A stretch of DNA of 64,000 nucleotides from Iphione sp. A-MEVVRFRX5 (taxonomy: Eukaryota): the NCBI GenBank assembly GCA_976226885.1, contig OZ320321.1, positions 73,842,001 to 73,906,000 on the forward strand. The letters are read 5' to 3'. Positions within the stretch are counted from its first letter, which is position 1. Every line of letters starts with the position of its first letter. A program made the position numbers and the translations under genes. The notes beneath the pieces are model-generated. The model was given only the letters and a program-made list of their open reading frames with translations, was not told where the DNA came from and ran no database searches. Below are positions 13,791 to 64,000 of the stretch, one piece after another.

Positions 13791-13809
13791 TTTATATATT
13801 ATTAATCCC

Positions 13810-15062: not shown

Positions 15063-15099
15063 ATGGTCAAATGGTTCTCAACTGGTATAGTGCCTTGTA

Positions 15100-15352
15100 T
15101 AGGCATAGATGTTCTCATAGGTCACAAATTCCTCCAAAAATGAGTATTTGGTCATATACGTATAGGTTATCAGAGTGGTCTCATTTTCTGTAGCCTATTC
15201 GGATTTCCTCCAGGGATGCATTCAACCTGGTATACAGTGTCGTCCCTCTTGTAGTTATTGATACGACTTAGAAGGTGGCACCCCCTGGAGTCACTGACAA
15301 TTAGTACACTTCTTGGATTAAGGTGCACTACGTTCTCTTTGGCAGCATAGTC
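15100..15352 (-). pseudogene. Element D: SGNH-like ORF, N-terminal remnant
   Basis: DYAAKENVVHLNPRSVLIVSDSRG ... VECIPGG ... YDQILIFGGICDL across frameshifts; cut off near the 63-bp array. Confidence 0.6.
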
Positions 15353-15402
15353 CTAGAATAGACAAGAAACCTTAAAAGTTGACTGTAATTTTATGAGGTA
15401 TT

Positions 15403-16420
15403 TACTGTATTAATTTATCCCTAATTTCAACTAGCAATTTCCCAAGAGGATTGGTACCTGGTGATCCATTTTTCCTGTGATCAATTCCTTGTAGGTGGTA
15501 CCCGTGCCTAAATTACCATCTCTGTCACTGTACACTATAGATCTGACCCCTGTGTCTGCTAGTACAGCCAATGACCCAGGCTTCTGTCCGAATTTTACCT
15601 GAAGTATGCTTCTCATTGTGGCTTAAATCACGAGCCCATTTGTCATTACTTCCTAGTACAGCACTGATCTCGTCAATGTTCTCTTCTGAGTGGTTACATA
15701 AGAGTAATTCACCCAGGTCACTACGGTTCAGTGATTTGGCCTTGCAATAGGAAACACACCGCTTAATTGAGACAGTCGTCAAAGTTAAAAGTGACATGGG
15801 GCTGTGGTGGAAAAATTGCTTTTTTGTTTGGTAGGAACAAGCTTAAGTTAGATAAATGCCCCTGGGGTGCTTATATAGCTGATTTATAGTGTATGCATTG
15901 GCTATCAATGACTATGTAAAGGCCATACACTGTAGCTTTATGATTTTTTGCTCTTGCCAATTGGGCAATTAATTGAAGCTCGTGTTGAATTTTCTGGGCC
16001 TGTGAGGGTAGATCTTCATTGACCCATTATTTCTTCAGCAGATTTCTATTTTTGTAAATTTGGTCTCTTTTCCAGTTGTTTCGAACTACAATAAATGAAG
16101 ATTTATCTGTTTTTCTGATTTCAGTCATGTCATCCTCAGATATATCAGGGCTAATGGTTCGTAGTAGCGAGAGAACATTATCAGTCAACTTTTCTTTTGT
16201 GGTCCTAAGTCCAGAGATAATGAGGTTATACCTTCTCGCTTGGACTTCCTCAATGAGTCTCCTGTCTGATAGTAGTTGTAGTTCAGATTTTATTTTGCTA
16301 ACCTCAGTGCTCAGTTGTCTTTTTTCATTCAGGGGTGACGCCACACAGTGACAGCCCATCAGTCCCAACTGATGCACGAGTCCCTCTGCTATAATGTGAA
16401 TCATCACCTAACTTCATTTG
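15403..16420 (-). pseudogene. Element D: LINE-type ORF1 remnant (coiled coil, RRM-like, CTD, NADAR)
   Basis: RRYNLIISGL..WVNEDLPSQAQK (ORF1 RRM/CTD) followed by YCKAK...KFGQKP..LADTGVRSIVYSDRD..G and GTNPLGKLLVEIRDKL (NADAR C-terminal signature); stops and frameshifts present. Confidence 0.75.
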
Positions 16421-27773: not shown

Positions 27774-28500
27774 TCAATAGTTCACATGAACGAGGGGGCC
27801 ATTGTTATTTATGTGGTAATAGCCATAGAGGAAAATGTACTCATGTAGAAAAAGGCGAATGGTGTAACTCCACTCGCCCACCGTTGCATCCTTGGGCCTG
27901 AACCCATCGTGCCTGAGGTGGTCAAAGTTATTAACTATATCTCCCCCACTTGGATGAGTGACCGGAGTAGCCAACGTACAGGGGAAGACTCCAATGGAGC
28001 TGGATGAGCTCTCACACCTTGACGTTATGGATGAACACCACCGCGTTGACTTTGAATTGCTCTAAGTCATCAGTGATGTGCGGGTTCATGCCAGATAAGT
28101 CGACGCATGCCGCCGGGCAGAGGATGACATGAGGACCACCATTTGGGCCCACATTGCACAGATGGCGAATCTTTCCAAGATAATAATCAAGTTGTTCCGC
28201 GTAGTTTGCAGGGGAACCCGTACGAACAGTCCACTCACCAGCTTCCTTCACCATCCAATCGTACATTCCGGTGGCAACTAGCAACAAGTGGAAACTGGAA
28301 ACATCGCTGTAGGACAGCCATCTCGCGATTTTCCTGTACGAGCACCTCTTGAGTGTTACTAGGTACATGGTCACAGGCGGCAACAAATGTAAGGACGCTT
28401 CCAGCTCCCTAAAGGCTGGCGAAGACCTTGTATCTGCGATGACCAGAATTCTCGTACAATGGGACGACCGTCCCTGTTGTGGATTCTTCATCACTTTCAC
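27774..28500 (-). pseudogene. Element A SGNH-hydrolase-like ORF (frameshifted)
   Basis: ILVIADTR..FHLLLVATGMYDW..VILCPAACVDL..HDGFRP; collinear with element C 57979-58707. Confidence 0.65.
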
Positions 28501-28595: not shown

Positions 28596-30120
28596 CTACA
28601 TGTCCGTTGTGTATTGCGCGCGAAGCCCCATCAGAACCTCCCCCACAATGTTTTTTCCAGCTGCGTTATCCGTCGTTGCATTACGAAGCGATGTGACCCC
28701 CCTAACCCCCATACTAAAAAGTAGGTCATGATCAACATAAAGAATACGCCGTGTTCCAGTAGAGATAAGTTCATCACGAGCCCTACTGTTGTTTTGAAAG
28801 TGTGAGGCATATACTTTTGTCAATATTACCTTCAAATGAGATTCCCATTCCGAAATTGATTGCGTTTTTTGGAATGCTCTCCTCGATTCCGCGCTGCTAC
28901 GACAGTTGTTGACAAATCTCAAATCACGCTCATAACGAGATCCCAACGAGAAGGCAGCCACTTCCGGTGAGGCGTATTGTTTACCATCAACAACTAATGG
29001 ACCTATCTTTTCCGGAGAGAATAGGGAATTATCAGCGTCGAATTTGTACACCTTGTCCAAAGTATGAGAGCTCAAGGTATCATCCTGCAGGTAAGATAGC
29101 AGATAGCGCGTGTCAAGTGGGGTAAATTTCTCACCATCGATGATAAGATCCACCCCCCTTACCATGGCCAAACTCCCTTGCCCACGTGCTTTCCTTGTGA
29201 GCCGTTGTTGCCTTTTGTTTATATCCAACACTGAGGAAGGTAGGTCCTCTTTGATGTAGATATCCATATTGTCATATCTCCTAAGCTTATGTTTATTTCG
29301 AAATATCTGGTTCCTTGCTTCAAGAGAGCTGACCAACACACCAACTCGTAAGTAGTCAGACGTTTCATTGTAAACAGTGCAGTCTAGCACCTTGTCATGC
29401 CGGATTCCTGCTATCGAGAGAAAGAGGTCAGCAAAGAACAATTTCAGTTGCTGCCTGTTAGCCTTCAGGATACCCTCAATACTCCTGTCATTTATTTCCA
29501 GGCGTGTTAAATCAAGTCTAACACCATTGCAGCCATCTGTCAGTGCCTTTAGCTTGATCTTGATGTCAGCAATTTTACTGTCAAGGGTTGAAGTCAATGC
29601 TTCATGACTGAGTTTGTGGTGAGTTTTCCACAGTTGATTTGAGATCACTGATGTCCTTTCTGAGAGTATTTATCTCGCCAATGAACCTCTCTTCTATCCT
29701 CTCCACAGTATGCTGGAATTCCTCACGGATCTCAGAGCTGATCACGTCGGGAGTAGCGTCAATTGGAGATAACCCATTATGTGTGACATCAGAGTCCTCA
29801 GTGTTTGGAGGAATCATTGGAGTGGAACTCATTAATTCTTCACCACGCTTAAACATGGGCTTCTTTAGTGGTCCATCCATATTCAAAGAGTTGATTTCTG
29901 GCCACTGGTCTGGAGACAAGTAGCCCTTGGAGAACGTGATACCATGATCGGCAGTAGACTCTGCATGGAGGTAAGTTAGGAACCTCGAATTGTTACTACT
30001 TATGGTAGAGTTCGTGATCTCAACCGAATTTGTGCCATTGTCCACATTCCTCACACTATTTGTGCAAAAGGTTAGATTATCCGGTGGGCATTTTGACAAT
30101 TTCGCAAGCTCCGACAGCAT
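28596..30120 (-). pseudogene. Element A ORF1: disordered N-terminus, coiled coil, RRM-like/CTD, C-terminal NADAR
   Basis: IYIKEDLP..MVRGVDLIIDGEKF, then VDGKQYASPE..W..HFQNN..ARDELISTG..ILYVDHD..GKNIVGEVLMGLR; frameshift at ~29640. Confidence 0.85.
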
Positions 30121-30369
30121 GAGACGGGTCAGGCAGCCTTCTCCGATAGCTGTAGTGAGCAGCCAAGATCTTTAGAGGTCTGAGGCAGATTGTCTGCGTT
30201 GTCTTCAGTCCTAAACGTGGTTCCAGAACACGTAGTAGACATAGTTAAATGACAACTGTCATTTGTAGGGAGTTTGTGGCGACCCATACCACATTTCTTC
30301 GCCATAACCGGGAGAGCGTTTGTCAGACACGTCTACTCGTCCGCCATGTTGTGCACCTACTGTTGAGTA

Positions 30370-30620
30370 TGGCTACCTTGTGGGTTTCCATCATGTTGAC
30401 CCTGTGGGGTATGGCTTCCCTTTGGAGTATGGAATTTCCTGTGGGGTATGGCTTCCATAATGTTGACCCTGTGGGGTATGGCTTCCCTGTGGAGTATGGA
30501 TTCCCTGTGGGGTATGGCTTCCATCATGTTGACCCTGTTGGGTATGGCTGCCTTGTGGGTTTTGATCTTGTGGACCCTGTTGGTTATGGCTGCCTTGTGG
30601 GTTTCGATCTTGTGGACCTG
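30370..30620. repeat. 66-bp and 42-bp tandem monomers in the 5' region of element A
   Basis: tgttgaccctg recurs at 30394, 30461 and 30527; tgtggacc recurs with a 42-bp step. Confidence 0.85.
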
Positions 30621-33600
30621 CCAGATGGTCCTCAAATACTTCTGCTGCTTCAGATGGCAATCGTTCAACAGACATCTTTCTTTTCCTGGCGGTGTGTTCC
30701 TGTCTTCCTGGCGTGTTCGGAGTGCAATGAGGGGAATGAAAATACATTCAAGGTCTCCCACACCTCTGACCTCGTGGGACCTAGCACTGGTGGACCCTAG
30801 ACTTGCCACCATACTCCTCCTTATCTACTTTTGATTCTCCCCTCTCCTCCTCCCCCCTCCCTTCTACTCTCTCCCCTTCTCTTTTCTCTCCCTCTCCTCT
30901 CCTTCTCCCTCTCCATCCCCCCTTATCTCTCTCCCTCTTGTTTTCACTCTCTCCCTGTCTCCCTCTCCCTTCTCCCTCTCCCGATCCCTCACTTTCTCCC
31001 TCTCTTCTGCCACTCTTCTGCTCTCTCTCCCTCTCCTTAACACTCTCACTCTATCCCTCTCATTCCCCCTCTTTCTCCTCTTTCTCTCTGCGCAGCCTCG
31101 TTGTATGCCAAATTTTAACCACAGTAAGCCTGTAGCCAGGTACATAACATTATATGAATACCGCTTGCGCTACAGCATTCTTAATCTCATGTTATTTCAC
31201 ACTTACCAAGCAACATACACTCCAGAGTTTCTGCCACAGTTTCTGCCACATCATGTATCCTGTCGTGTGTAGAGGTCTCTGCATCCTTCGTGGCTCGTAC
31301 AACCTGAGAGCAGGCAATTTGCCGCCAGTGACCATCTTGAATGCAGACTGATGGGACAAGCTGGTGCGACACGTGGCCATCGTCGGGGGCATTTTATTGC
31401 TGCCTCATTTCCATCACAGCGTAGCCTTGCCAAGTTCCCGCCTCAGCTCATATAGACATTGACAATGTCGGACATGGCAACAAGCATGCATCACCCAGGG
31501 GGTTGGGGAAGGGGTGAGTAAGGTACACAAATTGGCCACACCATTACACAAGGACAGGTACCCAAGCTATATTACAAGTACTATGCACGTTACAAAACTT
31601 TTCATGCCCATGCCCAAACTGAGTTAGAAGTTTTACTCACTATGATATCACACCTGCACAGTTGCCAACCGAGGGTGGTGCATGGCAACTGACCTGCCCT
31701 CCTTGGTTGCTGCGCTCTCAGATGCCGCTGGTGTCACTGTTATTTGTGGCATTGTGTTTATGTCAGCTGGGTCCTGAGAGGAAACAACACATGCTCTGTC
31801 AAACATTTTTTGTAACATAGTTGTCATTCTGGCAAGCACTCATAACACAGTGAATATCAGCACACCATAAAATGATTACACAGTTGCAAAGTCATTCGAG
31901 CAAGTACCACATTACAGGTAGGTTACTTACATGTCCGCCTGAGGGAAGAGGTCTGGTCCGAACAGGTGAAGGCAGCCTGAGCAGTTGTAGAGGTGGCGGG
32001 GTACCAGTGGGGTGAGATGGCGCACCTCTTGTCAGTTCAGGTGCCTGACAATCAAGTAATTTTATATAGGTGACATTTTCAAAAGATTTCGAAACCACCA
32101 GTGATTCAAAAGATTTCGAAACCACCAGTGATGCAGAGGACATCGGTTGAAATCCCAATCAAGGCAATATTTCAGATCATGGAAAAACTCAAATCTGTGC
32201 TCTTTTTGATTTTAGTATATAGTGGATAGTCTAAAGAGCTGTGCTCTTTGCTGTGCTCTTTCATCTTAGTATATAGTGGGTTACTTACCTGTTCACGGAA
32301 GGGAAGACATGGCCATCCACCATTGCTGGTGGTGGCTTCGGGCGGCGGTGGTGGATGGCCACTGGTGGTGGGCTCGGGTGGCGGTGGATGGCCACTGGTG
32401 GTGGCCACCGGGGACGTGTGTGACGGCACCTGAGAACCAAGTAACTTTTATATAGGTGACACGCTAGCTGATAATCTGTTGGAAAGAGCTGTGCTCTTTC
32501 ATTTTAGTATATAGTGGATAGTCTGTAAAGAGCTGTGCTTTTAGGTATATAGTGGGTTACCTACCTGTTCACAAAGAGGAAGGCGCCTGATCAGCAGCAG
32601 CGGGGAACGAGTTGGGTGTCTGCTGCTTCCTCCCTCTCTGGATTTTGGTCTGTATTGCAATGTGGTAATAGGTGATCATGTGTCATTAGGCTCAATGTTC
32701 TCTGAACAGGTTAATATGGGTTTAAACATTGTATATCATACACCCCACAACAAAAAGTAACATTATGTTAGTGTGAGAACACTAAAAATACCTCCATTCC
32801 TGTTGATCTATAGGAAACAAAACAAGGATCCCAACATATGTAACAGGTCTTCATACATTCATAACCACATTGAACTCATAAATAATCCATTGATGACATG
32901 CATGTGTTTTTCAAAAAAGATTATATACTTTGACCTCCCCCACTCCCAACATAGGTTGGGGGCAGGTGGGGGGGACAAACCTTTAGCCACTGAGGTTGCC
33001 AAAGGCGCTTGTAATGTGTAAAAAATAGATATTAGAAATACAAACACCAAACTGTGCTAAAGGCATCTACCTTACCAGGTCATCTCAACCATGACAATGA
33101 AGTAACTGTATATAGGTGACACGCTAGCTGATGTCCTCTTTCATTTTAGTATATATTGGGTTACTTACCTGTTCAGGGAGAGGAAGCTGCCTGATCACAA
33201 GCAGCAGGGTACGAGTGGGGTGTGCCTGTTCCTCCCTGTGTGGGTGTCGGTCTGTAGCACAATGTGTTAATAGGTTATCATGTGTCACATGTTCACATCC
33301 TCTTACCCAAGATAGCCTTTTTATGCGTTATGGCTAAGATAGCCTTTTTATGCGTTATGGCTACAGCAAATTCTTGGTATCGTTTTATTCATTTCTGTGT
33401 GTCAGATTGCTGTGCATCAAAATGATGCGAAGTAACAAGGCAGTTAGGCCTGGTTACTTCGCATTGTTTTGATCACTGCCCACTCCTGGCATGTCAGTCC
33501 ATGGGGGCAGCCCTGGCGATGGAAGTCATCCCCAGCCACTGAGGATGACTTTGCCACACAGTCCTGCTCTGTGGGCTGGTTTTTCTTCAAGTACTGTTCT

Positions 33601-37700: not shown

Positions 37701-38585
37701 ATTGTATTGTGACATGTGAAGAATTCACATGTCACAAAACAATCTCAGGTCAATGTCAATAGAATGGCAATATCAGGTCCCCTCCCTCCTTCCCCTTCTC
37801 TTCTCTCCCTCACTTTCTCCCATCTTTTGTTCCCCTCCTCTCTCACTCCTCTTTCGCTCAACCTCGTGGGACTTAGCACTGGTGGACCCTAGACTTGCCA
37901 CCATACTCCTCCTTATCTACTTTTGATTCTCCCCTCTCCTCCTCCCCCCCTCCCTTCTACTCTCTCCCCCTCTCTTCCTCCCCCCCTCTCACCTTCTCTT
38001 ATCACATAATTCACATCTGTCTGGCATGGTAGGTCATGCGTAGAGGTCGCTGCATCCATCGTGGCCCGTACATTGTGAAGGCGCACTGATACGACAAGAT
38101 CGCCCACATCGTGGCCCGAAATGGGGCCGACATTGGGGGTGTTTTGTCGCTGCCTTATTTCCGTCATGGTGCACCCTTCCCAAGTTCCTGCCTCAGCTGC
38201 ATATAGACATTGACATTGTCAGACATGGCAACAAGCATGCATCTACCAGGGGGGTGGGGAAGGGGTGAGTAAGGTACACAAATTAGCCACACCATTACAC
38301 AAGGACGGGTACCCAACCTACGTTATGAGTACCATGCATATGACGAAACTTTTCATGTCCATGCCCAAACTCAATTAGTCCATTCATTAAAAGATCTACA
38401 ACTACATCCAATATGTGAGCAGAAAGTTTTGCAGAGGAAATTGCACAATGCTTACTGGGAATATGTGCTACACTTGTATCATGACAACATGTTACAACAC
38501 AGCCAATCAGTGAAAGTTTTACTCACTCTAGAAGCTCACGTGTACAGTTGCTGACCGAGGAGGGTACACGGCAACTGAGTCTGTC
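34750..38585 (-). pseudogene. Multi-exon gene-like unit of unknown product (best-preserved copy of the module array)
   Basis: GT-AG-bounded modules of 80 nt (37239-37318), 123 nt (36362-36484) and 190 nt (36070-36259) have compatible phases. Confidence 0.55.
36525..36700. mobile_element. AT-rich DNA-transposon end fragment beginning TACCCAGCAAAC
   Basis: CCCAGCAAAC start followed by ttttcaaaag/gttttgaaaa low-complexity repeats; also at ~43749 and ~46278. No matching opposite end was found. Confidence 0.35.
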
Positions 38586-39420
38586 CCTTGGAGAACGTGA
38601 CACCATGATCGGCAGTAGACTCTGCATGGAGGTAAGTTAGGAACCTCGAATTGTTACTACTTATGGTAGAGTTCGTGATCTCAACCGAATTTGTGCCATT
38701 GTCCACATTCCTCACACTATTTGTGCAAAAGGTTAGATTATCCAGTGGGCATTTAGACAATTTCGCAAGCTCCGATAGCATGAGACGGGTCAGCTTGACC
38801 ATTGGATTCAAAATGGCATCCTTCTCTGACAGCTGTAGTGAGCAGCCAAGATCTTTAGAGGTCTGAGGCAGATTATCTGCATTGTCTTCAGTCCTAAACG
38901 TGGTTCCAGAATGCGTAGTAGAGAGTTAAATGACAACTGTCATTTGTAGGGAGTTTGTGGCGACCCATACCACATTTCTTCGCCATAACCGGGAGAGCGT
39001 TTGTCAGACACGTCTACTCGTCCGCCATGTTGTGCACCTACTGCTGAGTATGGCTACCTTGTGGGTTTCCATCATGTTGACCCTGTGGGGTATGGCTTCC
39101 CTTTGGAGTATGGATTCCCTGTGGGGTATTGCTTCCATAATGTTGACCCTGTGGGGTATGGCTTCCCTGTGGAGTATGGATTCCCTGTGGGGTATGGCTT
39201 CCATCATGTTGACCCTGTTGGGTATGGCTGCCTTGTGGGTTTTGATCTTGTGGACCCTGTTGGTTATGGCTGCCTTGTGGGTTTCGATCTTGTGGACCTG
39301 CTGCTAGATGGTCCTCAAATACTTCTGCTGCTTCAGATGGCAATCGTTCAACAGACATCTTTCTTTTCCTGGCAGTGTGTTCCTGTCTTCCTGGCGTGTT
39401 CGGAGTGCAATGAGGGGAAT
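38586..39420 (-). mobile_element. Duplicated 5' end of element A
   Basis: Near-identical to ~29928-30738 with the same 5' junction (gaatg|aaaatacattcaagg), so it was copied with its flank rather than retrotransposed. Confidence 0.9.
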
Positions 39421-45900: not shown

Positions 45901-48559
45901 CTGAGTCTGTGCCCTCCTCGGTTGATGCGGGTGTCACTATTATTCGTGGCATTGCAGACCTTTCTGCTGGATCCTGAGAGGAAATGACACATGCTCTGTC
46001 AAACATTCATTTTTCGTAATATGTGGTTTTCATTCTGGCAGGCACTTATAACACAGTAAATATCAGCACACCATCAAATGATTACACATTTGCAAAGTCA
46101 TTTGAGCAAGTACCACATTACAGGTAGGTTGCTTACCTGTCTGCGTGAGGGAAGAGATGGCGGCCTGAGTAGTTCACTGGTGGTGGCTTTAGGTGGCAGT
46201 GTACCAGTGGGGCAAGATGGAGCATTTCTTGTCGGCTCAGATCGCTGACAACCAAGTAACTATATAGGTAACAGGCTACCCAGCAAACATATAATGTTTC
46301 CTAAAGATTTCGAAAAGGTTTTCATAAAATGTTACTGTAAAACGTTTTTACAAGGTTTTTTAAATATTTTCAAAAGGTTTTGAAAAGGTTAAATGTTTTC
46401 GCAATGTTATGAAAAGGTTTTGAAAAGGTTCTTAATATGATATTGTAAAACACTTTTACATTTTTGAAATGATTTCAAAAGGTTTTTAAAAGGTAAAAGG
46501 TTTCAATTTAATAACATTTTTAAAAATCTTGAACAGAAGGTCAGGAGTGATGACAACATTTTACACAGCTAATAAGAGGCAGACTCAAGTGGCCAAATGG
46601 AAAAGAGTGCTGACACCAGCAGGCAATATTTCAGATCATGGAAAAACTCAAATCTGTGCTTTTTGATTTTAGTATATAGTGGATAGTCTGTCAAGAGCTG
46701 TGCTCTTTCATTGTAGTATATAGTGGCTTACTTACCTGTTCATGGAAGGGAAGATGCTTGAGCAGTGGTGGATGACGCCTGAGCAGTGGTGGATGGCCAC
46801 TGGTGGAGGGTTCAGGTGGCGGGGTTCCAGTGGGGTGGGATGTGTGCGACGGCACCTGACAACCAAGTAACTTTTATATACATGACACGCTAGCTGATAG
46901 TCTGTAAATTTTAGTGTATAGTGGATAGTCTGTAAAGAGCTGTCCTCTTTCATTTTAGTATATAGTAGGATGGTCAACATATGCAATAGATCTTCATACA
47001 TTCATAACTACATTGAACATGGCATGGTTTGTGGCATTGCAGACCTTTCTGCTGGATCCTGAGAGGAAACGACATATGCTCTGTCAAACCTTTTTTGTAA
47101 CATGTGGTTTTCATTCTGGCAGGCACTCATAACCCAGTGAATATCAGCACACCATCAAATGATTACACGTTTGCAAAGTCATTCAAGCAAGTACCACATT
47201 ACAGGTAGGTTACTTACCTGTCCGCCTGAGGGAAGAGATCAGGTCTGAACTGGTGAAGGCAGCCTGAGCAGTTGTAGAGGTGTCGGGGTACCAGTGGGGT
47301 GAGAGTGCGATGGTGCATCTCTTGTCGGCTCAGGTGCCTGACAACTAAGTAATTTTATATAGGTGACATTTTCAAAAGATTTGAAAAGGTTTTCATAAAA
47401 TGTTAAATGTTACTGTAAATGTTTTTACAATGTTTTCAAAAGGTTTTCATAAAACGTTATTGTTAAATGTTTTCAGGATGTTTTGGAAAGGTTTTGAAAA
47501 GGTTTTCATAAAATGTTATTGTAAAAATGTTTGAATATTTTCAAAAGGATTTGAAAAGGTAAAACATTTTCAAAACGTAAAACAGAGCTTCATAAAATGT
47601 TATGAAATAACAAGTTTTAATTATATTTTTAAAAAACTTAGGTCAGGAGTGATGACATTTACACAGCTAATAAGAGGCAGACTCTGTGGCCAAATGGATA
47701 AGAGTGCTATCACCACCAGTGATGCAGAGGACATGGTTAAAATCCCCATCAAGGCAATATTTCAGATCATATGTGCTCTTTTTGATATTAGTATATAGTG
47801 GATAGTCTGTAAAGAGCTGTGGTCTTTCATTTTAGTATATAGTGGGTTATTTACCTGTTTGCGGAGAGTAAGCCATCTGATCACAAGCAGTGGGGAAGGA
47901 GTGGGGTGGGATGTGTGTGCCTGTTCCTCCCTGTGTGGGTGTCATTCCTAAGATAACACTAGAGCATACGTCTTTGTGTAGGTGAATACTAAAAATACCT
48001 CCCATTTTTCTTGGCCTGTTTCATTGTTGTTGAACGTGTTTGTCTCCTGTTGATCTGTGGTGGATGGCCACTGGTGGTTGCTTCAAGCATACATCTTTTG
48101 ATTGTGTAGGTAAATACTAAAAATACCTCCATTTTTCTTGGCCTGTTTCATTGTTGTTGAACGTGTTTGTCTCCTGTTGATCTGTGGTGGATGGCCACTG
48201 GTGGTGGCTTCAGGCATCAGTGGTGGATGGCCACTGATGGTGGCTTCAGGCGGCAGGGTACCAGTGGGATGGGCCATGTGCGATGGCGCCTGACAAGCAA
48301 GTAAATTTTATTATATAGATGACACGCTGGCTGATAGTCTGTAAAGAGCTGTGCTTTTTCATTTTAGTATATAGTGGATAGTCTGTAAAGAGCTGTGCTC
48401 TTTCATTTTAGTATAGAGTGGGTTACTTACCTGTTCATTGAGAGTAAGCTTCACAGCCCTTTACATTTTAGTATTATTTATTAAGACATTCTTTATTCTG
48501 GAAATATTCATACTGTCAACCATTCACGAGGTATACAATTTTCAGCTATAATTTGATTT

Positions 48560-50075
48560 AGCAGGTAATGAAACTCATCGTCTAATGTTAGTAGCATCTC
48601 CTTTATTATTCACGTTGGAATGCCTCGTAACATGCTAGCCTTATTATCTTTCAGGTTAATTATTATTAAAGTGAGTTCTAGAATTGTAACTGGATCCATT
48701 TTGAAGCGATGATATGTCTTTGACCCCCTCTGGTACTGGGTAATCGGCAGTAGTTCTGATACTCTCTTACCTACTGAACTGAATAACATGTTGAATTTAT
48801 CAGCGATTATTGCGTTCGACAATACCTCACCATTATCATTTAGTAATTTTATAGTCCTAGGGACTTCACCATAACCATAGTGACCCTTCAGTTTATTCCA
48901 AAACTTTAAGTTCATATGATTTCTTTCTAACAGTATATTGTGCTATTTTCAACATCATTTTATCACCGGGATTACCGCTGATCCTGTATTTTGTTGCTGC
49001 CCGATGTTTACAGCGTATCATATCTAAAAATTCACCTGTTACCCATGGTGGGGTATCCTGTCTTATCCTAACTCTTTTTACTGCCGTCAGCTTGTTTAGT
49101 AAGTTATTTACCTTAGACATGAAAATTTCCCATTGCTCCTGTACAGAAGTAGAATTGTACATAGCTGACCAGTCAAGTTCAATCAGTGCTCAGTTTAACT
49201 GTTGAATATCAAGATTACTATAATTCCTATATTCTTTGACAATCTGTTTATGATGTTGATGTTGGTTAATTGGGAGTACAATCTCCAGCATATAGTGGTC
49301 ACTTAAATCAACTTGTATTACCTTATTACGAAGTATTGAGGCACAATTCGTTAAACGTACGTCAATTATAGTTCCACCAGAACCAGACGGTCTAGTAATA
49401 TTGTTAATTATTTGTTGGAGTGAACTAGATATACAAAAATCAATCATTTTTTGTCTTATTGGAGTACTCACCTTCCAGTCTATATTCATGTTACCTATAA
49501 GTACAAGATAGGTATTTTTTTTTATATAATCCATAGAGCTATCCAAAGAATGCATGAAGTTGTCAATGTTATTATTATTATTATTATTATTATTAATCTT
49601 TATTTCAACTGGTTCCTTCTTACATCATGGTATGAGTAATTGCGACCAGCATTATTGCAATAACAGTATAAATCATCTTGACAGCAAATGTTGCCAGAGG
49701 GCGGTCGGTATATGGCACCAATTAATATCCTAGGTAGATTTTTGCAAATTATGTAAAACCACATAACTTCAATATCTTCAGTCATAACCGGAGTAAGTTG
49801 GGATGGTGGTACCTCATATAAGAGCTGTTCTCGAATATATACTAAGAGACCACCTCCTTTATTTCTATTTCTATCTTTCCTGATAATATTGTACCCTCTT
49901 AATAGTTACAAGGTATCAGGAATGTCCGGCAATAGCCACGTTTCACTTAATATCAAACAATCAGGTTGTAATCTATGCATGAATAAAGTGAATTCTGGGA
50001 ACTTACCTAATAGGCTCCTAATATTAAGATAATAGTCAAACCAGGTGAGTACGACCCTCCAGTATCATTCATTAT
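48560..50075 (-). pseudogene. Element B ORF2: APE endonuclease and linker
   Basis: LNIRSLLGK, LSETWL, RKDRNRNKGGGLLVY, GAIYRPPSGN, GNMNIDW, ITRP..TIID, SDHY, PPWVT. Confidence 0.9.
49571..49686 (-). mobile_element. Short retroposed 3'-end fragment nested in element B
   Basis: Ends in AATAAA plus a (TAA)n tail; flanked by AATGTT at 49565-49570 and 49687-49692; splits the YRPPSGNID motif. Confidence 0.75.
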
Positions 50076-50788: not shown

Positions 50789-51460
50789 TTACATATTTAC
50801 CAGTAGTTTCCATAATAGTCTCTCAAGAGCATGTAACATTTTCATTACTAGCTTTACTTTCCAGCAATATTTTAGGTGACAACCATCAACATACCTAACC
50901 AATCGATGTCTCCAAGCTCCACAATTTCTGTCATGTATGACAGTACTAGTCCATGGAGTAGGAACCCCATAGGTTCTGTTCATTATTGTAATTATCTGAT
51001 TTATTTTAATAACGGAGTCAATGAGTACAGCTTGAGAATTAGTGGAGGCGGCAGCAACCTCCTGTGAGCCGTTTAATGTCAGATTGTACTTAGCAAGGTC
51101 AGTTGCAAATATAGTGCAGTACATGATCACACTGTACTGGAGCAGATTCCTGGTAGTCCACAGAGTGTACCCTACTATATTAGAGGCAAGAGTGGAATTA
51201 TCATACCTTGGCACTACATATTTCTTACGCAGTCCCTCAGCAGATCTTATCCTTATTTTTTTGGTAAGATTATTACCTCCGGCTAGGATCACTATCACTC
51301 TTGGGAATGGATGCCATGTATTTCTGACTACATACTCACAGATGGATTCAAGCCGCCCCCCAGGGAACACATGTACTTGAACATTCCATCCAAAATGATG
51401 GAATATATTTTCAAGCTGCCTGCCATGACTTGAAGCGAAGACGTGGATGTAGTTATCAAA
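50789..51460 (-). pseudogene. Element B SGNH/GDSL-like esterase ORF
   Basis: YIHVFASSHGR (block I), VFPGG (block II), ILAGGNNL (block III), VDGCHL (block V). Confidence 0.75.
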
Positions 51461-51547: not shown

Positions 51548-53025
51548 TTAGTTATACATCATGTCACTTAGTTTACTACGAGTCAGTTCAAGGATTTTGC
51601 CTAGATGGTTCAGCCCAGTAAATGTCCCATCCTTGATCTCTTTCGATTTTTTATTGGCACCAGCCCCCCAGAACGAATTTGGTGTACTTTCTACCAAATT
51701 TGCTTTGCCAGTTGCTAGTAGGTTATTCATTAGAGTAGTGTTTTGGTTGAACTTGGTATACACCAGTTCCTCCATCACTTCTAGTTTCAGCGTGTCCCAG
51801 TCTTCAACATCTTTTAACCCTCTACGTATATTTTTTAAGGCTTTATGATCGGTTGTGTGTAGAGAGAGGGACAGCTTTGAATCAACATTGGCAGCCTTGC
51901 ACTTTGAATATGTGTAAGCCTGCTCCAGGCTATCAAATGTTTTATTATCCCACATAATTTTACATGGGTAAAGATTTGACAAAAACGAATTTTTACCTGC
52001 ATACAGTAATATACCTGAGGTTGCTGCTTTTTCTGACTGTTCACCTTGATTCTCTTCAGTTTGCATGTTCGGTATTTTATCCAGGTTATCAACACTGAAC
52101 GATTTCCCATCTACAACCAATTGCTCCCCTCTAATGTAGACTGAAACAGAAGAATCATTTTTAGTTTTCGCATCATTCTCCTCAATTTGACTTGGGTTGT
52201 TTTCTGCCTTTTTGTCTTATCATTATTTATCCATACTTCCTTACCTTTTAATTTTTCTTTGCTAGCCAAATCTCATTCTTAGTAGCGAAACGAACAAATT
52301 TAACGAATACAATGGAGGTACCATTTTCTTTTGTTGATACTGTGTAACATTCACTTATATCTACCTTCGTTATATCCACACCTAAATCTTTGCAGAAATC
52401 TATCAATGTATCTTGGATATCAGCATCAGGGGTCAATGAAATACCATCAATAAATAGAATATTTCATTTTTGCACATGTTCCAGGTGTTCCAGATTATGG
52501 CACTCATCACTGTTTCCTTTTTTATTTTTCAGCAAGCCTATTTCTTCACACAAGTACTCATTTTCAGATTTTAAATGCTCAATTTCACTCTCCAAATTTT
52601 TTATTTTCTCCGAGTTTGTTCTCCGAAATGAACAATTTCATTGCAGGTATCAAGCTTACTGTCTATATCACTTAGTTTAGCTTGAACTTCACGACTTTCC
52701 TGAGCTGAGGCCTCTCTATTACGAATTATTTCTTTCAAAATAACGTCAAGTCCTGGAACACCACTTTCAGCTACTTCATCAAGTGAAAACTCAGTACCAG
52801 GACTGTTGTCCTTTCTCCTCTTACCTGAGAATTTCGATAAATCCGGAGTAGCAGTACCCTTTATAAGAAAATCAGAGATATCTTGCTGTTTTCCGTTCTT
52901 ATTCGTAGGTTCTGCACAAGTGTCTGCACCGGCCGGCGTTGAACATCAGAACTATTATTAGATTTGGCCTGTGGCGCTGACCCTTGGTTACTCGTACGAT
53001 CAGCAGTACTATTTTCAGATGCCAT
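51548..53025 (-). pseudogene. Element B ORF1 with a canonical NADAR (YbiA/RibX-like) domain; the NADAR part 51548-52120 is uninterrupted
   Basis: FLSNLYPC..FDSLEQAYTYSK..W..VMEELVYTKFNQN..LLATGKANLVEST.NSFWGAG..GLNHLGKILELTR closely follows the YbiA pattern FSNF..TSEHYFQAQK..KFEQH..LLLAT..LVE..D.YWG..GKNRLG.LLMELR. Confidence 0.9.
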
Positions 53026-54490: not shown

Positions 54491-54870
54491 TCATGTATGC
54501 GTAGAGTGCCTTTTGGGCAATGACCAGCTAGCCTTCGCAGTCTCAGGGAGCCCATTCCAAGCTAGGACCCCCCTATACCCCAATGACCGAGAGTATAGGA
54601 CAGTCCTTGGCCTAGACACTTTACATCTGTCAGTGCAACCTAGCCTCGCGGACGAGCTGGGCTCTTTTTCCATTAGCCCCAAGTGCACTAACCGATGCAC
54701 CAGTTGGACTCCTTTGTTCTCGATTAGGCTCTGTAACCGCGGGACTCCAAACCGACTGTGCAGCCTCGCTGCTGAAAGGAAGTGCCCTTTTTGGATACAG
54801 GCTCTTGCACACCGATTTACCTGGATTTGTAGTTTTGCCATTCCAGAAGATCCTAACGTGTAGAGTGCCG
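54491..54870 (-). pseudogene. Element C ORF2 C-terminus
   Basis: PALY..LQIQVNRCAR..FGVPRLQSLIE..AWNGLP aligns with the C-terminus of element A ORF2. Confidence 0.88.
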
Positions 54871-54875
54871 GGTAG

Positions 54876-55891
54876 ACTTGATCAAACGTATAGACATCAG
54901 AGGGTCGTCAGGTATCACTGGCGTTCCATCCAAAATCTTAAAGCCTCTACTACTAAGAGTCCCTGACTTTGTTGCGTGGATCTTTGGGCAAATCTTATCT
55001 GTAGGCAAATATCCAGATGAATGGAAGGTGGCAAGAGTGACGCCGGTGTACAAAAAAGGAGACAAAAACTGTCTAGGCAATTACAGACCGGTGTCTATCT
55101 TGCCCCTTCCAGGCAAGATCTGCGAAACCTGGTTCAATACCCAGCAAGTTGACTACATTGAAAGAAACAATCTGCTCAGTGCAAGCCAACATGGGTTCCA
55201 AAAAGGCAGAGGCACTGCAACTGCCTATTGTAAACTGCTAAATGTCATCCTTGAGAAGCAAAATGAAGGTCTGTTCACATGCCTACTCTCATTTGATTTG
55301 AGAAAGTGCTGCAGTCCATGGTGGATAAGGGGGTCGGACAGAAAACAGTAGCAATGGTAAAAAGCTACTTCACAGGGAGAGGCCAATTTGTGAGATGTGG
55401 CGATATATGCTCACAGGTAAGACCACTAGGCTCCGTGTTCGGTCCGACTGCCTTTACATGGGTGTTTTGACTCTATAATGGGGGTCCTTCCAGATGGAGT
55501 AGAATCGGTAGTATATGCTGACGACCTAACCATTGTAACATCAGGGAGTGAACAACAAACACTAAGAGAGTCGGCCATGCTAGCCATCAGTAGGGTTACT
55601 GACTGGTGCACTGCCAATGGTTTTGTACTGAGTGAAGAGAAATGCTGCTATGCTACGTTGGGAAGAGCGAGTGAAATAGACCTTGACCTGACGTTGAACG
55701 AAACACACTTGCAAAAAGTACAAACATTGAGGTTGCTGGGCTTCTTCATCGAATCGAAGCTAGGAATATCCAAGACTTGTAGTCATGTTAAAAAGAAAAT
55801 GTGGTTACCTGCAGGAAAAATTGCGAGGGTGAAACAACCTTCCTATCAGGGTCAGGTGTCAGCTGTTCGATTCACTTGTTCTCTCTCAACT
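54876..55891 (+). pseudogene. Element C RT core, inverted relative to the rest of the element
   Basis: WKVARVTPVYKKG..NYRPVSILPLPGK, QHGFQKG, FDLRK and YADD are all on the + strand. Confidence 0.92.
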
Positions 55892-56951
55892 GTCCCGCCT
55901 GCTCCAGTCGCCTGCCCCAAAAGGCCCTCATTTCCTGCTTGACTACCCTTGCTACCTGTTTCGACAGAAACCTGAATATGTTTCTACTGTCCTCACAGCC
56001 AACCCGTCTCCATTTCCTGAAATAGTAGTTCCTGTCTTGACTCAGTTCCTTTGCTGCAGCCGACAAGTAGAAGCCATCCTCCCTTTGTCGGGTTCTCACT
56101 ACAGTTTCGGGGCATTGGCTCTCCAGGATATCTCCTGTTTCCGTTATGAAATTGGACCAAGCTAATTCGTGGTTCCCAGGCTTATCTAACACCTCCTTAT
56201 CCCGTAGCATCGACACAACTTCTTCTAAGTTCACCCCACCCCAGTCTCATTTTGTGTGTGCAACTGTTCTTAAAGGTGGGACCCCCTTTTTTAAGACCAC
56301 CTGCACCGGTAGGTGATCACTAACGAATTCCTCAAGTACTCTGGATTTCTGATTCCCCTTGCACTTTGCCCATATTTAGTCCAGAATATGTGTGCTGTTG
56401 ACCATGGTGGGTTCAGATGTCAGCTGTGTGTACCCCTTTCCAGTTAAGAATGATATCAGCCAATTTCCTACCCTTCCTGGATTGCTGTGATCAAAGTTTA
56501 GATCGCCCAGAATGAACCTGTCTCTACGACTTTTACAAAAGACACTCTTGTAGGCCGTAGTCATAGCCCTGGTAGTGCCATCTAATGTGTCATTCGGTGG
56601 GCAATAGACACACAATAAATCTATAGGCCGCCTTTTGCCACCTTTTAAACTAACTCCTACTATTTCACAACACGAGTCAGGAGTGCCCAATAGTGTTACA
56701 TCTAGCAGTTCAAAGTCCTTCCGATAGTACACAATTATCCCACCACCCTTTTTCTTTCCCCCTGCTTGCCTATCCGCCCTCACAAATTTAAATCCCGGAA
56801 TGGTGACTTCTACATCAGAAACAGTGGAATTTAACCAGCTCTCTGTTATACACAACATATGAACATTGTTTTTCTTGATTAAAGTTGTGACAAGTGGGAC
56901 TTTCCTGACTATGCTCCTAACATTCCATGTAACAATTTTTAAACCCGGCAT
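55892..56951 (-). pseudogene. Element C ORF2: APE endonuclease and linker
   Basis: MPGLKIVTWNVRS, LCITESWL, GGGIIVYYR, GDLNFD, PTMV..HILD. Confidence 0.92.
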
Positions 56952-57978: not shown

Positions 57979-58707
57979 TCATTCAGCCAGGTTTAGATGA
58001 TGGTGCCCGTGTTCCCTGATATACTCACCAATGAGCAGTTGAATCGCAAATGCCCATTCACCAATGACAATATCCTTTGGTGTGTAGCCATCTGTGCCAA
58101 GTAAACTAAAGTCATTTACTATCTCACCTCCTGCATTTTGACTTACCGGCATCGCCAGGGAACACAGGTTGATGCCTATCCTCGTTGCTGATGATTCGCA
58201 GAACATATCATTGATATGTACTGCCACGTCCAGCTTGAACTGTTCCAAATCCCCATCAACGAGGGCTGGTTTGAGTTTGGAGAGATCAATACTTGGTGAG
58301 CCACAAAACAGCAAATGTGGGCCCCCCTCTCCCACTCGACACCGACGTGCCACCTTCGCTAGTGATCTGCTGAGCTTCTTTGAATACTCTGCTGGCGAAC
58401 CCATAGACACGGCCCACTGGCCCGTTTCCCAGTGCAGCCAGTCATGGGCTCCAGCAGCAACTATGATCACATGAAATCTCCTGGGATCCGCGTACGATAG
58501 CCAACGAGCTACCCCTCTGTAGCTGCATCTCTCCAGGGTTATTATGTAGATCTTGGTCGGGGGCAGCAGGTGGATGGTATTCTTCAGTGCTTTGAAAACT
58601 GGTGCAGTCCGCTCGTCAGCTATCACCAAGATGTTCATCTGATGCGAAACCTCTTCACCGGGTGTTTCATCATAGAGGCTATGGGAGTAGATAACAATTT
58701 TACACAA
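57979..58707 (-). CDS. Element C SGNH-hydrolase-like ORF (open, 242 codons)
   Basis: MNILVIADER..FHVIIVAAGAHDW..LLFCGSPSIDL..DGYTP; the only uninterrupted copy of this ORF. Confidence 0.65.
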   Translation of the reverse strand: MCKIVIYSHSLYDETPGEEVSHQMNILVIADERTAPVFKALKNTIHLLPPTKIYIITLERCSYRGVARWLSYADPRRFHVIIVAAGAHDWLHWETGQWAVSMGSPAEYSKKLSRSLAKVARRCRVGEGGPHLLFCGSPSIDLSKLKPALVDGDLEQFKLDVAVHINDMFCESSATRIGINLCSLAMPVSQNAGGEIVNDFSLLGTDGYTPKDIVIGEWAFAIQLLIGEYIREHGHHHLNLAE

Positions 58708-58776: not shown

Positions 58777-60441
58777 CTACTGCATCAAAAACTTGCCTCT
58801 GATCTTCATCAAAGTTTCCCCCAAGAGATTTTTCCCAGAATCATTATCCCCAGAGTCATTGTCAGTGGATAGCAAGTTCACGATTCCACTCCCTAGCTCC
58901 ATATCGCGATCAACATATACAATCTTCCTCCTTCCCGTGGCAATTAATGCTAGTCTTGCCTCTTTGTTGTTTGCGATAACATTTGACATTACTTTTTCAA
59001 GAGTTACCTGTGAATTCGAGTCCCATGTTTGTTTTTTCTGCCCTTTGACTTGCTCATTTGATTTCATCAACCGCTTCCAAGTTGTTTATTTCACGCGCTA
59101 GTGCAAGATCTCGTGCTGTGCGAGACCTTAGGCGGTGATAGGCCACTTCTGGGTTATGGTAATGTTTACCATCAAGGATTAGTGGCCGCAAGCACATGGG
59201 CAACAGAAGGCTGTGGTCTCTGTCAAATTTAAACGTTTCCTCTGTTATGGCAACATTTTTCTCATTCGTTCGCAAGTCCTCAGGAAGGAATTCAAACATC
59301 TAGTGGAGTGTATTTTGTGCTGTCAATGATGAGGTCGATACCACGGACACTCGCCTTGTATCTGCTCGCTCGTGCCTTGGCTGCCAGTCTTCATTGCTGC
59401 GTGAAGATGTGTTTCAAGTCTTCCATCGTCGACAGCTTACCCTTTTTCCTTAATATCATGTTCCTCGCCTCTATTGAGTTCAAGAGGACTCCAACACGTA
59501 TCTTGGTTTTTGTTTCGTTAAAGACCAAGCAGTCCACTATCTCACTGGGTTTGATGTCTGCTACCTTTCCCAGTATGTACACAATTCTGTCGCGCAGTGT
59601 CTGTTTTTGACCGATGTGCACGCCATCAACAATCAAGCGCCTACATCGATCCTTAACCTCTAGCCTGGTCAAGTCGAGCTTCACATTGTTACATTGCTCA
59701 CCAATAGCTAACATGTGGCTTTCCATTTCAGCCAGTTTATCATCTAACCTTGCCAGATGTGCATTCTCAGCATTCTTTTTTCGGCTTCGTCACCAGCTTT
59801 ACCTCTGCCCGTGTAGTTATCTCATGCCTTATCTAGGTGATCTCCTGCCTGACCCCGGTGATCTCCTTATGCACGCCAGCCAGTTCAGTATCCACGTAGG
59901 TTCTGAAACATTTTATTTCCTCTCTCAATATATTTAAGAGATGGCTATTCCTGCAGTCATTGTCATCCGCGCTCCCTTCATCATTTACCCTGTCACCTGT
60001 AATCGTAACATCAGTCCCAATGTTATTCACCGATCCACTTGAACCTGGGCCCATCTGTGGATTGTTGTTGTCGGTGACAGTGTCACTACTCTCTCCTAAG
60101 GAGCATTCAGTATGCGTACCATTGGAGTCAATATTATTGTCGTTGCAAATGACGATGTTATTGATTTCTCCAGTTGGCCTACCTGCCTCAGGGCTGATGC
60201 AACCCTTGGAATCCTCCTTCCCATCATTCAAGCTCTGGACACCATGCAGGCGTTTGACATTGACCATTGGTCGGAGGTTTAAAGGTAGATTCTGCAGATT
60301 ATTGCTCACCATCCCCAAGTCAGGTAGGTCCGCAGCAAAGATCCTATTTCTCCTCCTTATCCAATCATCAAATGTATTTTGGCCTGTTCTTGAGTTGTTC
60401 TCAGACCTTCTTGCGCCGTCTCTTGTCGTTTTTCTACCCAT
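58777..60441 (-). pseudogene. Element C ORF1 (frameshifted) with a C-terminal NADAR domain
   Basis: RRLIVDGV..EARNMILRKK (RRM-like), then LDGKHYHNPE..W..ARLALIATGRRKIVYVDRD..GKNLLGETLMKIR. Confidence 0.85.
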
Positions 60442-60519
60442 GATTTCAATTAGGTAAGCATATTGGCGGGAGAGCACCTGTCAGCGTTACCTACTCGGTC
60501 ACCATCTTATCTTCCAATC

Positions 60520-61600
60520 TTGATTGTGTAGGTGAATACTAAAAATACCTCCATTTTTCTTGGCCTGTTTCATTGTTGTCGAACCGGTTTGTCTGCTGTT
60601 GATCTTCAGGCGGCGGTGGTGGATGGCCACTGGTGGTGGCTGGCCACTTTCAGCTGGCGGGGTACCAATGTGGTGGTATATGTGCGATGGTGCCTGTTCG
60701 CGAAGAGGAAGCCTTCTGATCACAAGCAGCGGGGAATGAGTGGGGTGGGATGTGTCTGTTCCTCCCTGTGTGGGTGTCATTCCTAAGATGTCTTTTGATT
60801 GTGTAGGTGAATACTAAAAATACCTCCATTTTTCTTGGCCTGTTTCATTGTTGTTGAACGTGTTTGTCTCCTGTTGATCTGTGGTGGATGGCCACTGGTG
60901 GTGGCTTTAGGTGGCAGTGGTGGATGGCCACTGGTGGTGGCTTCAGGCGGTGGGGTACCAGTGCGATGGTGCCTGACAAGCAAGTAACTTTTATATAGGT
61001 GACATGCTGGCTGATAGTTTGTAAAGAGCTGTGCTTTTTCGTTTTAGTATATAGTGGGTAGTCTGTAGAGCTGTGCTCTTTCATTTTAGTATAAAGTGGG
61101 TTACTTACCTGTTCATGGAGAGTAAGCCATCTGATCACAAGCAGTGGGGAACTAGTGGGGTGGGATGTGTGTGCCTGTGGCTGTTCCTCCCTGTGTGGGT
61201 GTTATTCCTAAGATAACACTACAGCGTATGTCTTTTGATTGTGTAGGGGAATACTAAAAATACCTCCATTTTTCTTGGCCTGTTTCATTGTTGTTGAACG
61301 GGTTTGTCTGCTGTTGATCTTCAGGCGGCGGTGCTGGATGGCCACTGGTGGTGGCTTCAGGTCGTGGTGCTGGATGGCCACTGGTGGTGGCTTCAGGCGG
61401 CATCAGTGGTCAATGGCAACTGGCGGTGGCTTTAGGTACCATCGGTGGTGGATGGCCACTGGTGGATGGCCACTGGTGGTGGTGGTGGATGGCCACTGGT
61501 GGTGGCTTCAGGCGGCGGGGTACCAGTGGGGTTTGAGTGCGATGGCGCATCTCTTGTTGGATCAGGTGCCTGACAACCAAGTAACTTTACATAGGTGACA
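60520..61600 (-). repeat. Tandem two-exon-like modules (Pro/Thr/His-rich) with 136-nt and ~56-nt GT-AG intervals
   Basis: GAACAG|GTAAGT ... TTGTCAG|GCACC and TGGAG|GTATTT ... TCTTAG|GAAT repeat in tandem. Confidence 0.65.
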
Positions 61601-63379: not shown

Positions 63380-63930
63380 TACAAGACCCCCTTCTGATTC
63401 ATAACGAGTAGTTTCCGTCAGGCTACATTCCAGGTAGGAACCATGGACTGGAGTCGTATTAGAACAAGAACCGTCTTGCTCGTTTGATGTTCATGCTTGA
63501 ATGGTACGGTATTTAGCAACATGCATAGACCCCGGATTACGTCAGATTAGGTAGTGATTCAGTGGGCTTGAGCATGTCACTTTATCCTTGTACCCAGTCA
63601 AATAAATCCCTCAAGCAGATACACTAGCTCATGTGGCGTGGGTGTACAATCAACCACGGGCAGCCAGACCAGCTTCTCCATATTGAGGCTGCTTCGAGGC
63701 AAGGCTTCACGTTCTTTAGAGGCCGAAGAGGAACGGGCCCTGACTGACGCCTACCGAGTGGTAATTAAACAAGATCCTGAGGTGATGCAGGCTTTTCAGG
63801 ATACTGCTATGAAGGAGATCGTCTATGCATCGCGAGATCCTTTTGGGGGACCTGTCACCTCTGAAGTATTGGGGGGCCTGGTTGGGTCCGATACCCCCCA
63901 GAAAACCTCCTGGGTCCGGGCCTGGAATAT
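63380..63930 (+). pseudogene. Element E: ORF1 CTD + NADAR remnant on the opposite strand
   Basis: IHNE.FP..ARL..LNGTVF (CTD-like), SLYPC, QDPEVMQAFQDTAMKEIVYASRDPF and, after a frameshift, YPPENLLG..LE. Confidence 0.6.
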
Positions 63931-64000
63931 GAACCCCTTTATTCATCAAAGTGTAGCATAGCCAGTACATGAGAGCAATAGTAGCACGTATAACGAGTAG

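Follow-up and report, generated by a model that had tools for sequence, protein, structure and literature searches.

Results

A NADAR domain in ORF1 of a three-ORF LINE

The stretch of DNA analysed here (the window) comprises 64,000 nucleotides from Iphione sp. A-MEVVRFRX5 (assembly GCA_976226885.1, contig OZ320321.1, positions 73,842,001 to 73,906,000) and contains several long interspersed nuclear elements (LINEs), one of which, element C, encodes a NADAR domain at positions 51548–52120 of the window. All parts of element C lie on the minus strand and follow one another in the order broken open reading frame 1 (ORF1), NADAR domain, SGNH-like ORF and, lastly, pieces of an apurinic/apyrimidinic endonuclease (APE) and a reverse transcriptase (RT). 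The N-terminal part of ORF1 (52121–53025), which begins with an ATG near 53025 and is broken by stops and frameshifts, comprises a coiled-coil region and pieces of the RNA recognition motif (RRM) and C-terminal domain (CTD) at 52165–52457; a hidden Markov model (HMM) of ORF1 matches these N-terminal pieces at profile positions 199–297. The NADAR frame itself (51548–52120) is open over 190 amino acids (aa), with the canonical domain at residues ~43–184. Beyond it lie a separate middle ORF resembling SGNH/GDSL esterases (50789–51448; 76 bits with the middle-ORF HMM), which retains the blocks ‘AGGNNL’ and ‘DGCHL’, and an ORF2 remnant (48619–50031) with the APE and the start of the RT (ORF2 HMM, profile positions 8–457 of 946), the remainder of the RT being missing. 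The element is thus made up of three ORFs, namely ORF1-NADAR, a stand-alone SGNH-like ORF and APE-RT. Protein identity to the closest relatives in this genome does not exceed 71%.

The frame at 51548–52120 encodes a canonical NADAR domain of the YbiA family. The Pfam NADAR profile (PF08719), whose cut-off is 35.1 bits, matches it with 92.4 bits (E 4.8e-26) over profile positions 9–162 of 163, and the sequence also matches the solved NADAR structures 8BAU (9.5e-8) and YbiA, 2B3W (1.7e-6), to which its identity is 24–26%. An AlphaFold2 model, for which an alignment of 23 relatives from the genome served as input, has a pLDDT of 93.3, and the only significant matches to this model in Foldseek are 8BAU and 2B3W, both with a TM of 0.80 and prob 1.00. 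The model thus has the YbiA fold, in which small sheets flank a core of five helices. Profile search and structure prediction therefore agree with the original prediction, made from the DNA letters alone, that this frame encodes a NADAR domain.

Residue numbers are given here for the P. nicotianae NADAR, corresponding to the 8BAU chain index minus 2, a correspondence which we verified on nine residues. The catalytic centre of that protein is lined by E43, K50 and E125, and ADP-ribose is contacted by G78, R79, V81, D86, W89, R93, D130 and W133 (PMC11543638). When aligned with 8BAU, copy C has glutamate at the equivalent of E43 (LEQAY), lysine at K50 (YSK) and glutamate at E125 (LVEST), so that the full YbiA-type catalytic set is present. 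Among the ADP-ribose contacts, D86, W89, W133 and R79 have identical equivalents, while D130 is changed to asparagine and R93 to lysine. DarT1-type NADARs (BC4488 subfamily) are distinguished by an aspartate in place of the last-strand glutamate and by a neighbouring DarT1 gene; copy C has the glutamate, and a search of the genome for DarT gave no match, as it also did in control genomes.

The canonical family in this genome

When the genome was searched in six frames with PF08719, 4,416 first-look candidates were obtained, and all 150 of those that were scored exceeded 93 bits, most of them within open frames of 450–700 aa. We read eight 10-kb stretches around canonical copies, and in every one found a single design of ~6.3 kb in which ORF1-NADAR is accompanied by a middle ORF and ORF2; Pfam, which was applied to three of the eight, reported NADAR and APE-RT. 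At these loci ORF1 is ~550 aa long and carries NADAR (~100 bits) at its C-terminal end, the middle ORF is 226–262 aa long with no Pfam match, and ORF2 (APE-RT) is ~950–980 aa long, forming one uninterrupted frame at four loci and being split or 5′-shortened at the others. Very divergent families (L031–L038) share a conserved 5′ terminus, in which CATGGCGGAGTAG is followed ~35 nt later by GAGCGGGTTTGCTTA. At the 3′ end, where this is covered (L034 and L037), a CCTGG...CCAGG stem is followed by TTAAATAAA and then by a poly(A) of A13-15. The same stem lies at the edge of the stretch read in L033 and L036.

Compared with the PDB, a profile of canonical ORF1 built from 14 intact copies matches 8BAU (1e-22), YbiA (6e-22) and human L1 ORF1p (2YKP/2YKO, 3e-8), as well as 2LDY (L1 RRM-CTD) and 6FIA (L1 coiled coil); the Pfam profile PF02994 itself gave no match. 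Together with the structural model of element B described below, these matches identify the protein as an L1-type (type II) ORF1p, consisting of coiled coil, RRM and CTD, to which a C-terminal NADAR domain has been appended. The original prediction had placed NADAR after the RRM/CTD of ORF1 and had taken it for a part of the LINE and not a one-off capture. Both views hold, since L1 ORF1p structures and NADAR structures are matched by one and the same ORF1 profile, and since the thousands of candidates, the pairing of ORF1-NADAR with ORF2 at all eight loci and a similar linkage in other assemblies speak for a travelling unit.

The best NADAR match in the genome (L001, G000:C22:27636416-27636865; 176 bits in a 329-aa open frame) was at first considered a host NADAR gene, but falls among ORF1-type sequences of other assemblies in the domain tree; it may be either a host gene or a domesticated or transposable-element copy.

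For the middle ORF no significant match was found among Pfam or PDB profiles. Language-model features of the L038 middle ORF score 0.94 to GDSL clusters, with 60 of 100 matches in the commonest Lipase_GDSL family set. We looked for the SGNH blocks I (GDS), III (GxND) and V (DxxH), and these are present in L038 as SDSHG, AGSNN and DGCH, present in part in copy C, and degenerate in the main canonical family (L031–L037, for example L033:2502-3209), where the presumed catalytic Ser (FSDGRG), Asn (GIYD) and His (DGxR/K) have been lost. Despite this loss the frame is open in all seven intact copies of L031–L037, which suggests a conserved pseudo-esterase in that family. As a lead, the middle ORF may be regarded as a candidate esterase or pseudo-esterase.

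Selection and distribution

Selection was measured as raw proportions of nonsynonymous and synonymous differences (pN and pS), synonymous sites being saturated for most pairs. Among 11 intact members of the main canonical family, pN is 0.105 for NADAR vs 0.264 for the preceding 215 aa (median pS 0.86, saturated), so that no other part of ORF1 is as constrained as NADAR in this family. The equivalents of E43 and K50 are invariant in 23 diverse copies from the genome.

In the public databases, an exhaustive search with the full ORF1 profile (HMMER, 1.84 billion representatives) returned 58,247 matches at E<=1e-3, of which 1,895 reached E<=1e-30. Among the 150 best matches, the majority align continuously from the coiled coil up to and including NADAR, and Pfam NADAR scored at least 86 bits in all ten that were scanned from among them. 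Over the same 150 representatives, E43 is retained in 143, E125 in 142 and W89 in 149, and the K50 position is lysine in 101 and arginine in 33. Word-index searches for homologues of an intact ORF1 and of the C domain gave three matches each and said little about distribution. ORF1-NADAR followed by APE-RT was seen directly in the ENA assemblies ERZ26222911 and ERZ25767047, in one of them with a 207-aa ORF in between. The backbone of the NADAR tree is not resolved. Judged from these sequences, the fusion of ORF1 with NADAR is old, widespread and selectively kept. This accords with a further point of the original prediction, that the architecture is retained at the level of the family. The catalytic Glu pair is present in ~95% of the best 150 matches, and canonical NADAR is under strong purifying selection.

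Unusual layouts occur in three public proteins. In P0003 (861 aa) an ADP-ribosylglycohydrolase domain (PF03747) is joined to NADAR, while NADAR stretches number five in P0005 (1075 aa) and seven in P0004 (4240 aa); such layouts may reflect tandem arrays or the fusion of gene models.

A divergent sister lineage with an altered active site

A second, B-type lineage yielded 3,211 first-look candidates genome-wide, of which 116 were scored (41–88% identity); many have open ORF1 frames of ~560–620 aa. The alignments of the B-type and canonical families match each other in hhalign with 97.5% (E 8e-12, 169 columns, 12% identity), and the domain is homologous over its whole length; the ORF1s of C-type and B-type elements align over 302 columns. 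The B-type domain retains the equivalent of E43 together with W89. At the position of K50 it has G, L, C or R, at that of E125 Y or F, and at that of W133 L, F or V, and the equivalent of D86 is also lost. In the domain tree the B-type sequences form one long-branch clade with support of 100/100. Their NADAR-like domain has a pN of 0.277, vs 0.278 in the remaining ORF1, and with a pN/pS of ~0.40 it is still constrained. The B-type domain is probably not a canonical hydrolase, and the pattern of replacement under constraint suggests that it has most likely been turned into a conserved pseudo-enzyme with a structural or binding role.

Other copies in the window

Element B, on the minus strand, has the 5′ motif CATGGCGGACGAG (30336–30348) and an ORF1 (28596–30348 including the motif) that is split into two frames, 29602–30120 and 28596–29648, the B-type NADAR-like domain without K50 and E125 occupying ~28602–29096. 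Pfam NADAR scores 33.9 bits on the frame 28596–29648, slightly below the cut-off of 35.1. A model of 350 aa (pLDDT 65) matches YbiA (2B3W), 8BAU and the L1 ORF1p trimer (2YKO/2YKP/2LDY) in Foldseek, all with prob 1.00. A truncated, SGNH-like middle ORF (28012–28500) and an ORF2 (APE-RT) in several frames (23297–25972; ORF2 HMM, profile 19–924) complete the element on the same strand.

Element D, also on the minus strand, has an ORF1 in pieces (58777–60477), in which the frameshifted stretch 58777–59299 holds a split B-type NADAR-like domain (58789–59281) that matches Pfam NADAR with 37.9 bits (58777–59070) and the B-type HMM with 78.8 and 61.9 bits; for alignment only, the broken frame was joined with an X at the break. 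A middle ORF of 242 aa (57979–58707) and ORF2 remnants (54533–56939, with the APE at 56391–56939 and further pieces) follow. Within the ORF2 remnant there is an RT fragment in the opposite orientation (54875–55837, plus strand), reflecting an inversion or a nested second LINE.

What is left of element A is a decayed ORF1 on the minus strand (15170–16407, with pieces at 16027–16407 and elsewhere), a frameshifted NADAR remnant (15408–15571) and the start of an SGNH ORF (15170–15328, ‘IVSDSRG’). The NADAR remnant carries the signature ‘IVYSDRD’ as in B-type sequences and gives weak matches (Pfam 14.6 bits, E 0.04; HMM E 4e-4 to 5e-4). Neither the ORF2 HMM nor the listing of ORFs revealed an ORF2 for element A, and a 63-bp satellite occupies 13806–15083 instead. 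This array, which is also scored at 189 bp (score 1586), cuts the element just past the start of the SGNH-like ORF.

In copies B, D and A the K50 position is occupied by G or R, among others, and the E125 position by Y. Lacking the lysine and the last-strand glutamate, these three cannot simply be called erasers of ADP-ribosylation.

A further claimed copy, E, is a 107-aa frame on the plus strand (63638–63961) containing ‘IVYASRDPFGG’. Its homology to NADAR is not significant: it has no Pfam match and, in unfiltered searches, no match at E<1 to either of the two family HMMs, and hhalign places it in register with both family alignments but insignificantly (prob 1.6–4.5%). We have not counted it as a NADAR copy.

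The original prediction had counted five NADAR copies, had A, B and C leading into an APE-RT ORF2, and gave A and C defined LINE ends. Of the five, C is canonical and B, D and the remnant A are divergent and NADAR-like, without K50 and E125, while E drops out. The continuation into ORF2 stands for B (23297–25972) and for C as far as profile position 457 of 946, and fails for A, where none was detected. A search for the ends of A and C found none, including for C the family 5′ and 3′ end motifs, and among the claimed copies the family 5′ motif (30336–30348) is found in B only.

A sixth LINE piece (38575–39029, minus strand, and 39067–39238), which lacks NADAR, comprises only the 5′ motif CATGGCGGACGAG and ~146 aa from the N-terminal end of a B-type ORF1. 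The 5′ ends of this piece and of element B (30249–30800) adjoin a similar tandem repeat of ~66 bp encoding ‘PVGYGFPVEYGF’, which could be a repeated monomer of the 5′ untranslated region or a preferred target. Repeats translating to ‘PPPVAIHH...’ in several frames are found at 60499–61600 and 47974–48217, with a related stretch at 46732–47001, and probably belong to another dispersed repeat family.

Clade of the elements

No CCHC-like motif was found in six ORF2s, whereas Tx1 LINEs are characterised by a long ORF2 with a CCHC at its C-terminal end and by insertion at specific sites. The ORF2 is compact (~950 aa), with GVPQGSILGPLLF and YADDT motifs and a C-terminal ‘...LW..LP...FK..LK’, traits that would fit the CR1/L2 (Jockey-superfamily) side better than L1/Tx1. 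Language-model names for ORF2 did not point to any clade. ORF1 proteins of type II are known from the L1, CR1, L2 and R1 clades and esterase ORF1 from CR1 and L2, and NADAR is absent from the catalogue of ORF1 domains in the same work (PMC4120745). A paper on gastropod retrotransposons without long terminal repeats contained nothing on an ORF1-NADAR architecture. A CR1/L2-type label is plausible in that it fits the size of ORF2, its sequence signatures and the esterase ORF; the 3′ ends, which are poly(A) in L034 and L037 and not a short tandem-repeat tail, do not fit classical CR1/L2 elements.

Discussion

The identity of the NADAR domain and its place in ORF1 of a LINE are, in our view, as good as certain. 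The case for an undescribed architecture is weakened by an earlier report: NADAR has been found in the Pol of Ectocarpus Gypsy elements, and several Tx1 LINE families of the oyster in Repbase appear to have a YbiA-family NADAR in their ORF1 (PMC12477816, Genome Biol 2025). The Pacific oyster elements thus share with those described here a YbiA-family NADAR in the ORF1 of an invertebrate LINE, for which a role in processing of the RNA intermediate was suggested, although the report is a single sentence and leaves them uncharacterised. Set apart by description, the elements of this genome have an ORF2 of ~950 aa without a C-terminal CCHC, RT motifs of the GVPQGS/YADDT type, an SGNH-like ORF and a pseudo-NADAR sister lineage. 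The fusion has therefore been noted in print but not characterised, and what is new here is the three-ORF design with its SGNH-like ORF, the scale and strength of active-site conservation, and the pseudo-NADAR sister lineage.

Several known systems bear comparison. The YbiA-family hydrolases (8BAU, 2B3W) have the same fold (TM 0.80) and the same E43, K50, E125, W89 and W133; they are, however, stand-alone cellular enzymes, whereas here the domain is fused to the RNA-binding protein of a retrotransposon. Orphan NADAR antitoxins with which phages counter DarTG1 (PMC11825919), and the DarT1-associated NADARs, likewise present a mobile parasite equipped with a NADAR that could undo ADP-ribosylation of nucleic acids, but these belong to the BC4488 or phage subfamilies (with Asp or His) and face a known writer, while the present domains are YbiA-type (Glu) and have an animal host, in whose genome the searches for a writer of the DarT or pierisin type gave no match, as they also did in control genomes. 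The type II and type IV ORF1s of CR1/L2 LINEs (PMC4120745, PMC3905857) have the same core of coiled coil, RRM and CTD, in elements with an accessory hydrolase of the SGNH kind. The elements described here, by contrast, encode the esterase-like protein in an ORF of its own that lies between ORF1 and ORF2, and in the main family the catalytic Ser and His of this protein are replaced.

Turning to function, YbiA-family and eukaryotic NADARs take ADP-ribose off guanosine in DNA, and mutation of E88, K95 and D171 in the NADAR of E. coli C7, the equivalents of E43, K50 and E125, impairs de-ADP-ribosylation and/or rescue from DarT1 toxicity (PMC11543638, PMC11125620). ADP-ribosylation of cytidine is likewise reversed by YbiA-type enzymes and by a NADAR from a sponge, and both DNA and RNA are substrates of the writer ScARP (PMC12945103). 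The canonical elements carry a canonical NADAR active site, kept by selection, on what is predicted to be a trimeric protein coating the LINE RNA, and the conservation of this site under strong purifying selection is in keeping with an enzymatic function, for example de-ADP-ribosylation. When an element is active, the ORF1p trimer on its RNA would place three NADAR hydrolase domains on the ribonucleoprotein (RNP), where they could cleave the N-glycosidic bond between ADP-ribose and the base (guanine N2, possibly cytosine) on element RNA, nascent cDNA or nicked target DNA. Removal of such adducts during target-primed reverse transcription would keep the template readable and undo base ADP-ribosylation imposed on the element. 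We give this eraser mechanism, for the canonical (C-type) elements, close to an even chance.

A number of observations weigh against it. Copy C itself is a dead copy of the three-ORF LINE, with a broken ORF1 and an incomplete ORF2. E125 is replaced in some canonical subfamilies, by A in L015, L029 and L034, by L in L006 and L008, and by K in L013 and L032. Thousands of B-type copies do without K50, E125 and W133, so that catalysis must be dispensable for at least some elements. Finally, base-specific ADP-ribosyltransferase writers were sought in the genome with PF03496, PF14487 and PF01375 and no match was found, control genomes being equally silent. The loss of these residues from a B-type domain that is still conserved and abundant, and the canonical-type subfamilies without E125, would also suit a non-catalytic module that binds ADP-ribose, NAD-derived nucleotides or nucleic acid, or that stabilises the ORF1p trimer; it might, for example, be a ‘reader’ which guides the RNP to nicks in DNA where the chromatin is ADP-ribosylated. 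As a reader of ADP-ribose the B-type domain is a poor candidate, since the contacts provided by the equivalents of D86 and W133 have gone as well. More generally, a non-catalytic module sits badly with the catalytic Glu pair found in nearly all of the 150 diverse canonical representatives, and with a canonical NADAR far more constrained than the RNA-binding part, as is expected of an enzyme active site, and we consider it possible but rather unlikely.

The domain might instead be an N-glycosidase with another substrate, which could cleave reactive ribosylated small molecules as YbiA does, or remove some other bulky base adduct or modified nucleotide from the template. E. coli YbiA, a close match in fold to the model of copy C (TM 0.80), was originally described as an N-glycosidase acting on riboflavin intermediates (work cited in PMC11543638). 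However, guanosine-ADPr was hydrolysed by all of the YbiA/NADAR proteins tested in PMC11125620, metabolic housekeeping offers no obvious gain to a retrotransposon, and a domain fused with an RNA-coating protein would be expected to act on nucleic acid, all of which makes a different substrate quite improbable. That the domain is a fragment or exon of a host NADAR gene lying by chance beside a LINE, or that the similarity is fortuitous, draws only on the broken state of copy C; it is set against the Pfam E-value of that copy, thousands of copies in frame with ORF1 and the same architecture in other assemblies, and we dismiss it as wildly implausible.

The eraser mechanism may be carried one step further. 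The canonical LINE NADARs would then be active nucleic-acid de-ADP-ribosylases that shield the RNP or cDNA from a putative base-ADP-ribosylating system of the host, an animal counterpart of the anti-DarT NADARs of phages, with the pseudo-NADAR lineage as a relic or decoy of the arms race; in this extended form we judge the proposal speculative and unlikely to hold. The ADP-ribosylation of bases in DNA and RNA has only recently been recognised, and NADAR is, to our knowledge, the only family known to reverse it on guanine and cytosine. The presence of this domain in the RNA-coating protein of thousands of retrotransposons, under strong selection across many lineages, argues that base ADP-ribosylation, or a related N-glycosidic adduct, may matter in retrotransposition. 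The ORF1-NADAR LINEs could link nucleic-acid ADP-ribosylation to the control of mobile elements in animals, and their catalytically altered sister lineage would provide a natural control.

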